DNA of 64,000 nucleotides from positions 11,160,001 to 11,224,000 of the forward strand of contig CM106585.1 of the NCBI GenBank assembly GCA_048013815.1. Reading direction: 5' to 3'. The notes beneath the pieces are model-generated. The model was not told the DNA's origin. It saw nothing but the letters and a program-made list of their open reading frames with translations, and made no database searches. Made by a program: the position numbers and the translations under genes. Positions 1 through 1,249 of the stretch are shown in pieces (the stretch's first letter is position 1; each line of letters opens with the position of its first letter). Source of the stretch: Setoptus koraiensis (Eukaryota; Animalia; Arthropoda).

Positions 1-496
1 GGTATGTCCATGACCGGATCGCGGACCGGCGAAAAGCCCCCAAACAGATCGGATATCCGCGCCCGATGCTCGCAGCGAGATCGGGCGTAAAGAGTGAGCG
101 CATGGCCGCTCGGCCACCAAGTGGCCAGAACAAAAAGAAAATAATATATTTATATTCAACACACTGCAACACATGTGACAGCATTTACCTGGTTGCGCCG
201 CTACCTGTAGCAACGAAATGTGTGAAAATATTAAAATGAGAAGACAATCAGTCGCCATCGTCATCATCGGATCCCTTGTTTTTTGATCCCTGTTACGTAT
301 TTCAATATTTATATTAATATTACTATTATCATTACAAACTGTAATAGTTTATTATTGCCAATATTATTAGTAGATAATCACTAAGCACAGCAACGCTACA
401 AATGATATTAATATACCATCTATTATTATAACAGGTTAACAATGTTATTATCTTATTCTTTTGCGAACAATATCGAGAGTGCTGCAGTTGGTAAGC

Positions 497-733
497 ATGC
501 AGTCTAGAACAAGGAAGCCCAAAAGACAGGTCCAGCAAACTATGCTTGCAAAAGAAAAAATTGAAAAAATACAAGACAAATTGAGTATATCAGAGAGATT
601 TGATCACGAACTAGAAATTAATTTAGCACAACAACGAGTTGACCTCAATAAAAAAAGAACCAAGGAATTCATTGATATTCAATTAAAATTAAAGGATTAC
701 GATTGGATGTACAAGAAATTATGCCTTACTTAG
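497..733 (+). CDS. Small 78-aa coiled-coil-type ORF, weakly APC16 (ANAPC16/EMB-1)-like; stop codon overlaps the SRP9 start
   Basis: ATG at 497, TAG at 731-733. C-terminal KKRTKEFIDIQLKLKDYDWMYK resembles the R..[ED][LF]..L...L..D[ED]W.[FY]K end of APC16 proteins, and an upstream SERF word is also present in human ANAPC16 (recalled, not searched). Confidence 0.45.
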   Translation: MQSRTRKPKRQVQQTMLAKEKIEKIQDKLSISERFDHELEINLAQQRVDLNKKRTKEFIDIQLKLKDYDWMYKKLCLT

Positions 734-951
734 CGAATTGGGAGGAGTATAGTAAGCAGGCTCAAGAGTTGTATGATAAAAATCCAATGGGGTGCCGTGT
801 CGTATTTAAATACAGACACAACGATGGTCGCCTTGTGCTCAAGGTGACAGACAATAAAACATGTCTCCTATATCTAGCGGAGCAAGCTCAAGATGTCAAA
901 AAGATAGATAAGCTATTGTCCGGTATGATGCGAAATATGGTGTGCAAATAA
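721..951 (+). CDS. SRP9: Signal recognition particle 9 kDa protein (76 aa, intronless)
   Basis: MPYLANWEEYSKQAQELY...RVVFKYRHNDGRLVLKVTDNKTCLLY...QAQDVKKIDK matches the SRP9 family throughout. The true ATG is at 721; the ORF track starts at a TTG at 703. Confidence 0.96.
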   Translation: MPYLANWEEYSKQAQELYDKNPMGCRVVFKYRHNDGRLVLKVTDNKTCLLYLAEQAQDVKKIDKLLSGMMRNMVCK

Positions 952-1249
952 ATATTATCACGATAAAATAAAGTTTAGGATGATGGATATATATAAACAC
1001 GCTACAATTCTGATTCAATGCACACAATAAAATGCCACACATATTGAATGCAAACAGTAAATTACTTCATTTACTAGATTTTATATAATATTCATATTCA
1101 GAATATTTATTTATTAAACAATATATTACATACACATTTGCATACATCTCATCAGAGTTGATTCAATATCCACATCAAAGATCGATAATCACATTGGGGA
1201 ACATTTCATGGTGAAAACAATAGACACCCGGCCTCGGGAGTATCACTGT

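Follow-up and report, generated by a model that had tools for sequence, protein, structure and literature searches.

The gene pairs stoned A/B and Adh-Adhr of Drosophila are arthropod dicistronic genes, and the upstream cistron of stoned is reportedly poor in AUG codons. In both pairs, as in the mite locus described here, a single strand codes for two unrelated proteins whose ORFs are separated by a short spacer at most, and this layout persists across species; the mite pair further resembles stoned in its AUG-poor upstream cistron. The mite locus differs from both systems in that its cistrons overlap by 13 nt, its first cistron encodes an orphan protein of 57–79 residues, its single mRNA is one that we infer, and the two genes occur apart in one lineage. 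The locus belongs to a known kind, i.e. arthropod dicistronic or overlapping gene pairs, and the well-conserved case involving SRP9, together with the orphan microprotein family associated with it, is new. A literature search returned no paper combining 'SRP9' and 'dicistronic'.

The locus is located in a 64,000-nt stretch of DNA (the window) from the genome of Setoptus koraiensis, which comprises 48.8 Mb in two contigs. Published gall-mite genomes are 32–35 Mb in size, largely intronless, and contain tiny intergenic regions, and one of them was assembled as two chromosomes (PMC7738191, PMC11879100).

Reading of the sequence confirmed the layout given in the original prediction: a 78-codon ORF extends on the plus strand from an ATG at 497–499 to a TAG at 731–733 and runs, without a spacer, 13 nt into the SRP9 ORF, which lies in a different frame and extends from an ATG at 721 to a TAA at 949–951. 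The latter was assigned to the SRP9-21 family on the basis of its match to Pfam PF05486 (E = 7.5e-13; 49 bits, the curated cut-off being 21), and its homologues share 51–93% identity with it. The family of the small protein is represented by a single copy in the genome. NDUFV1, the neighbouring gene on the minus strand (1250–2398), is arranged tail to tail with the small-ORF–SRP9 pair. The closest relatives compared were a Logan contig (L001, encoding protein P0001) and an ENA contig (L002), in which the small ORF is cut at its 5' end. The features of the locus are as follows.

497–733, plus strand: small-protein ORF, putative first cistron, 78 amino acids, basic, single copy (dN/dS, alignment A3, AlphaFold2 helix)
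721–951, plus strand: SRP9 ORF, putative second cistron, 76 amino acids (Pfam PF05486)
721–733, plus strand: 13-nt segment common to both ORFs, in which ATG CCT NNN xTA G of SRP9 is read as ..C-L-x-stop in the small ORF (identical TAG position in the window, L001, L002, L005, L007, L010/L011, and L012)
677–721, plus strand: clade-specific insert of 15 codons (residues 61–75) that contains DYDWMYK (alignment A3)
704–729, plus strand: 26-nt segment spanning the SRP9 ATG, zero substitutions in three species (window compared with L001 and L002)
424–496, plus strand: conserved leader or promoter-proximal block 5' of the small-ORF ATG, including ATGTTATT at 442–449 (comparison with L001)
947–972, plus strand: two AATAAA hexamers (947–952 and 967–972) at or just 3' of the SRP9 stop, likely poly(A) signals of the unit (sequence reading)

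Another AATAAA, which is located within the small ORF (647–652) and is kept in L001, probably represents mere Asn-Lys codons in AT-rich DNA.

As judged from its substitution pattern, the ORF at 497–733 is a genuine gene under purifying selection, far beyond what chance would produce. P0001, which was recovered by word search, also consists of 78 residues and is 97% identical to the window protein, and L002 carries the small ORF with the identical 13-nt overlap. The dN/dS values of the small ORF are 0.04 against L001 (dS 0.28) and 0.10 against L002 (dS 0.81), and those of SRP9 in the same pairs are 0.05 and 0.06, respectively. Differences between the window and its relatives are concentrated at the third positions of codons in the small-ORF frame, and both other frames are closed by stops across the small ORF in the comparison with L001 and L002. 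The non-coding DNA upstream has strongly diverged between the window and L001, whereas the small ORF is conserved; conservation with L001 starts again at about 424, after the diverged stretch. Similarity to L002 is lost after about 955, just 3' of the SRP9 stop. No differences from either relative are present in 704–729, whereas the flanking coding sequence differs from L002 at about 1 in 6 nt. The check proposed in the original prediction, dN/dS and synteny in related mites, therefore came out in favour of the ORF, which is under purifying selection and recurs in relatives with its SRP9 overlap. The GTAAGC hexamer to which the same prediction had pointed is present at 491–496, directly 5' of the small-ORF ATG; the accompanying caveat that it could be the donor of a 5'UTR intron is unlikely to hold, because its GT reads AT in the sister species L001.

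A full HMMER search of 1.84 billion representatives with the window protein recovered P0001 only, and the family was therefore followed by synteny: SRP9 loci at 50–66% identity were fetched, and the upstream DNA of each was read for ORFs. The loci L005, L007, L010/L011, and L012 each contain an ORF of 57–79 amino acids terminating 13 nt inside SRP9, and the overlap with TAG at the same position is found in six lineages. The ORF of L005 matches the window protein in BLASTP (E = 2e-4). Alignments of the proteins (A2 and A3) contain invariant positions around KFE.EV and ELHKKRL, those in A3 being K, F, L, and K-R. Eleven further members (P0016–P0026), all from Logan assemblies and all without Pfam domains, were identified by a profile word search, and an HMM built from A3 and run over all fetched loci matched at family sites only. 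Upstream ORFs of this type were not found at the SRP9 genes of Halotydeus destructor (L003), L004, and L008/L009. Synonymous sites are saturated between the distant lineages, among which the small protein evolves about 1.5–2 times faster than SRP9 (pN 0.20–0.33 vs. 0.10–0.21), and all family members are basic (pI 9.1–10.2). SDHB and TMA7 lie downstream of SRP9 in L005 and L012, a synteny that is reshuffled relative to the window.

Single-sequence searches of Pfam and the PDB with the window protein yielded no match, searches of the ESM Atlas with the window protein and P0018 yielded no usable match, and a scan of JGI metagenomes with the family alignment gave 429 pattern matches, 0 of which were confirmed. 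A homologue with a known role was not found in the Pfam, PDB, HMMER, ESM Atlas, profile word, or Foldseek searches. On this comparative evidence, the window ORF is a local, divergent member of a new orphan microprotein family of 57–79 residues, which has so far been seen in compact mite-like assemblies only and whose breadth is judged solely from the SRP9 divergence of Logan and ENA contigs (51–66% identity). The family is unannotated, its predicted structure is a single helix, and it has been missed by standard gene calling and by family libraries.

We lean towards the reading that the small ORF and SRP9 are expressed as two proteins from one intronless dicistronic mRNA, that SRP9 is translated by leaky scanning, and that the small protein serves a separate function; the joint mRNA, the way in which SRP9 is initiated, and the role of the small protein are all points that we infer. 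The two ORFs lie on the same strand, encode distinct proteins, leave no room for a separate promoter, and are kept across species. The 13-nt overlap in six lineages, the lack of a spacer, the ATG-poor first cistron, and the change from GT to AT at 491 back one half of the original prediction, that of a bicistronic unit; the other half, according to which the unit combines SRP9 with an APC/C subunit, is not supported, no match to APC16 having been obtained.

In all six lineages with the dicistronic arrangement, the sequence reads ATG CCT NNN xTA G, which places the TAG at the same site; this TAG, created by the conserved codons 4–5 of SRP9, terminates any upstream ORF in the small-ORF frame. 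The Pro codon of SRP9 is CCT in every dicistronic lineage, and of the three monocistronic SRP9 genes, those of L003 and L008 use CCG, a pattern taken as a sign of selection on the overlap. The bodies of the small ORF, from its own ATG to that of SRP9, contain 4 ATGs in 936 nt in five lineages, whereas codon shuffles predict 9.4 (P = 0.005) and mononucleotide shuffles about 15.6; SRP9 contains 43 ATGs in 1062 nt in the same comparison. Internal ATGs are entirely lacking in the first cistrons of L007 and L012, and two, both in frame (542 and 707), are present in the small ORF of the window's clade. This depletion of AUG in the upstream cistron is of the kind expected of a dicistronic gene and fits leaky scanning, which is favoured because a first cistron poor in AUG is expected if ribosomes scan it to reach SRP9. 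A purine occupies position -3 of the small-ORF ATG in all lineages (A in the window), and this good context of the first AUG argues against abundant leaky scanning.

In the proposed mechanism, one intronless dicistronic mRNA would carry both ORFs. Ribosomes initiating at the first AUG, with its A at -3, would produce the small protein, and those passing it would scan the nearly AUG-free first cistron and start at SRP9. Reinitiation, in which ribosomes that have terminated at the TAG would start again at the SRP9 AUG just upstream, is our second choice and is less likely than leaky scanning. The invariant segment 704–729 fits leaky scanning, reinitiation, or an internal start site.

The last of these leads to a reading that is unlikely but quite conceivable, namely that two overlapping genes are transcribed separately, with SRP9 having a start site of its own within the 3' portion of the small ORF and both mRNAs being monocistronic. 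Under this arrangement, which would suit a very compact genome, the segment around the SRP9 ATG that does not vary among three species could represent a start-site element. However, the ATG poverty of the first cistron would be purposeless if ribosomes never scanned it to SRP9, and both the arrangement and the exact overlap have been kept across lineages in which synonymous sites are saturated.

It is improbable that the small ORF is a conserved-peptide uORF whose sole role is cis control of SRP9 translation, e.g. by stalling or by setting the rate of reinitiation. Its position upstream of and overlapping a main ORF is as expected of such an element, and the overlap forces a choice between two starts; however, at 57–79 amino acids the ORF is long, it is conserved along the whole helix, and one lineage retains it as a stand-alone gene without SRP9. 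In the latter lineage (contig L013), the gene for P0024 has its own TGA, is followed downstream by AATAAA, and lies tail to tail with an NDUFV1 gene whose product is 88% identical to that of the window, thus occupying the site at which the window has the small-ORF–SRP9 pair. The SRP9 gene of the same sequencing run is found alone on another contig, L008. P0024 shares 85% identity over shared residues with its nearest dicistronic relative (hand count of the listed sequences). Because the L013 lineage keeps the small gene without SRP9, the comparison argues for a function of the small protein itself, beyond that of a regulatory uORF. The likely history, as read from these sequences, is a dicistronic ancestor followed by separation in the L013 lineage, because the C-terminus of P0023, the nearest relative of P0024, is still the Cys-Leu that the start of SRP9 imposes. 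In L013 (2501–2803), the SRP9 cistron is absent from the DNA separating the small gene from NDUFV1; an ATG persists at the former SRP9 start, and the frame behind it is unrelated to SRP9.

As to what this function may be, AlphaFold2 predicted one long helix both for the window protein (residues 8–77) and for P0018 (residues 2–60), with a pLDDT of 89.8 in each case. On the strength of these models, the small protein probably acts by docking its helix on a partner or by forming a coiled coil. A Foldseek search of the PDB with the helix model gave no match. Prediction of a complex between SRP9 and the small protein gave an ipSAE of 0.02, which counts neither for nor against binding. It is quite improbable that the small protein arose in the gall-mite lineage from the leader of SRP9 and, as a basic RNA-binding helix, cooperates with SRP9, the Alu domain of SRP, or the ribosome, with the overlap setting the ratio of the two products. 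A role as a replacement for SRP14 was ruled out, as SRP14 is present in the genome.

The family profile matched the linker and first SAP-like helix of MANF/CDNF in the PDB over about 40 residues (E = 0.1–0.8), and these matches were taken as chance. A relation to MANF/CDNF was rejected on comparison with the MANF of the mite itself (L014), which gave no match to the family (hhalign probability 0.4%, BLASTP E = 26), and the small protein showed no significant similarity to MANF/ARMET (PF10208 and PF20145). A second ARMET_N match (E = 2.9e-19) was observed in the genome some 2 kb away from the canonical MANF gene, inside an open frame of 551 residues (L016; G000:C1:15406420-15406680, minus strand), and this frame may represent a MANF-domain fusion or a paralogue.

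The identification of the small protein as APC16 is highly improbable and is not supported by any of the sequence tests applied here. In structures of human APC/C, APC16 consists of a single helix, and the mite protein shares with APC16/ANAPC16 (PF17256) its small size, fast evolution, and predicted single long helix, a trait that is not specific. The original prediction likened DYDWMYK in the mite protein to the C-terminal end of human ANAPC16 and C. elegans EMB-1. This motif, however, lies in the insert confined to the window, P0001, and L002 and is absent from the other 13 members of A3; Trp is absent from 12 of the 16 family members, and thus a Trp-containing C-terminal motif is not conserved. 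The proposed HMM comparison with the ANAPC16 profile gave no match at E<=10 in any of the six members scanned, and a search of the whole genome with PF17256 was likewise without a match, as was the same search in its control genomes. The APC16 chains of human APC/C in the PDB were not recovered at E<=10 either by phmmer with the window protein or by two family-profile searches. Every member of the mite family is basic, whereas human APC16 is acidic, and the full HMMER search yielded no relative outside the clade. Finally, a programmed -1 frameshift that would fuse the small ORF to SRP9 in the overlap has a negligible probability: the two frames overlap and are one base apart, but the overlap lacks an X XXY YYZ slippery heptamer, the conserved Met-Pro also marks the start of SRP9 in species that lack the upstream ORF, and the small protein exists alone in L013.

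The dicistronic unit would be a clean and deeply conserved addition to the few dicistronic genes of animals. Its AUG-poor first cistron provides a testable signature of the start of the second protein, and the lineage in which the pair is separated provides a natural control. Two-protein messengers may be in routine use in streamlined mite genomes, and if this is true, the annotation of such genomes would change.

Several sequence motifs were observed in the DNA upstream of the unit, a region in which an Rfam scan detected neither 7SK nor any other family at E below 0.28. Motifs resembling ATGTTATT are located 55–68 nt upstream of the small-ORF ATG in L001, L007, and L012, so that, with the copy in the window, four lineages carry it; this element may be a start-site or promoter element. 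The ATG contained in the window copy would open a mini-ORF of 21 codons ending at 505–507. The sequence AAATTAAATAGCGCGCGG, possibly a promoter motif, is present upstream of the dicistronic unit in L005 (about 2735–2755) and L012 (about 2345–2365). Farther upstream in the window, a block at 92–240 (1096–1244 in L006) is conserved with L001 and precedes the diverged spacer.
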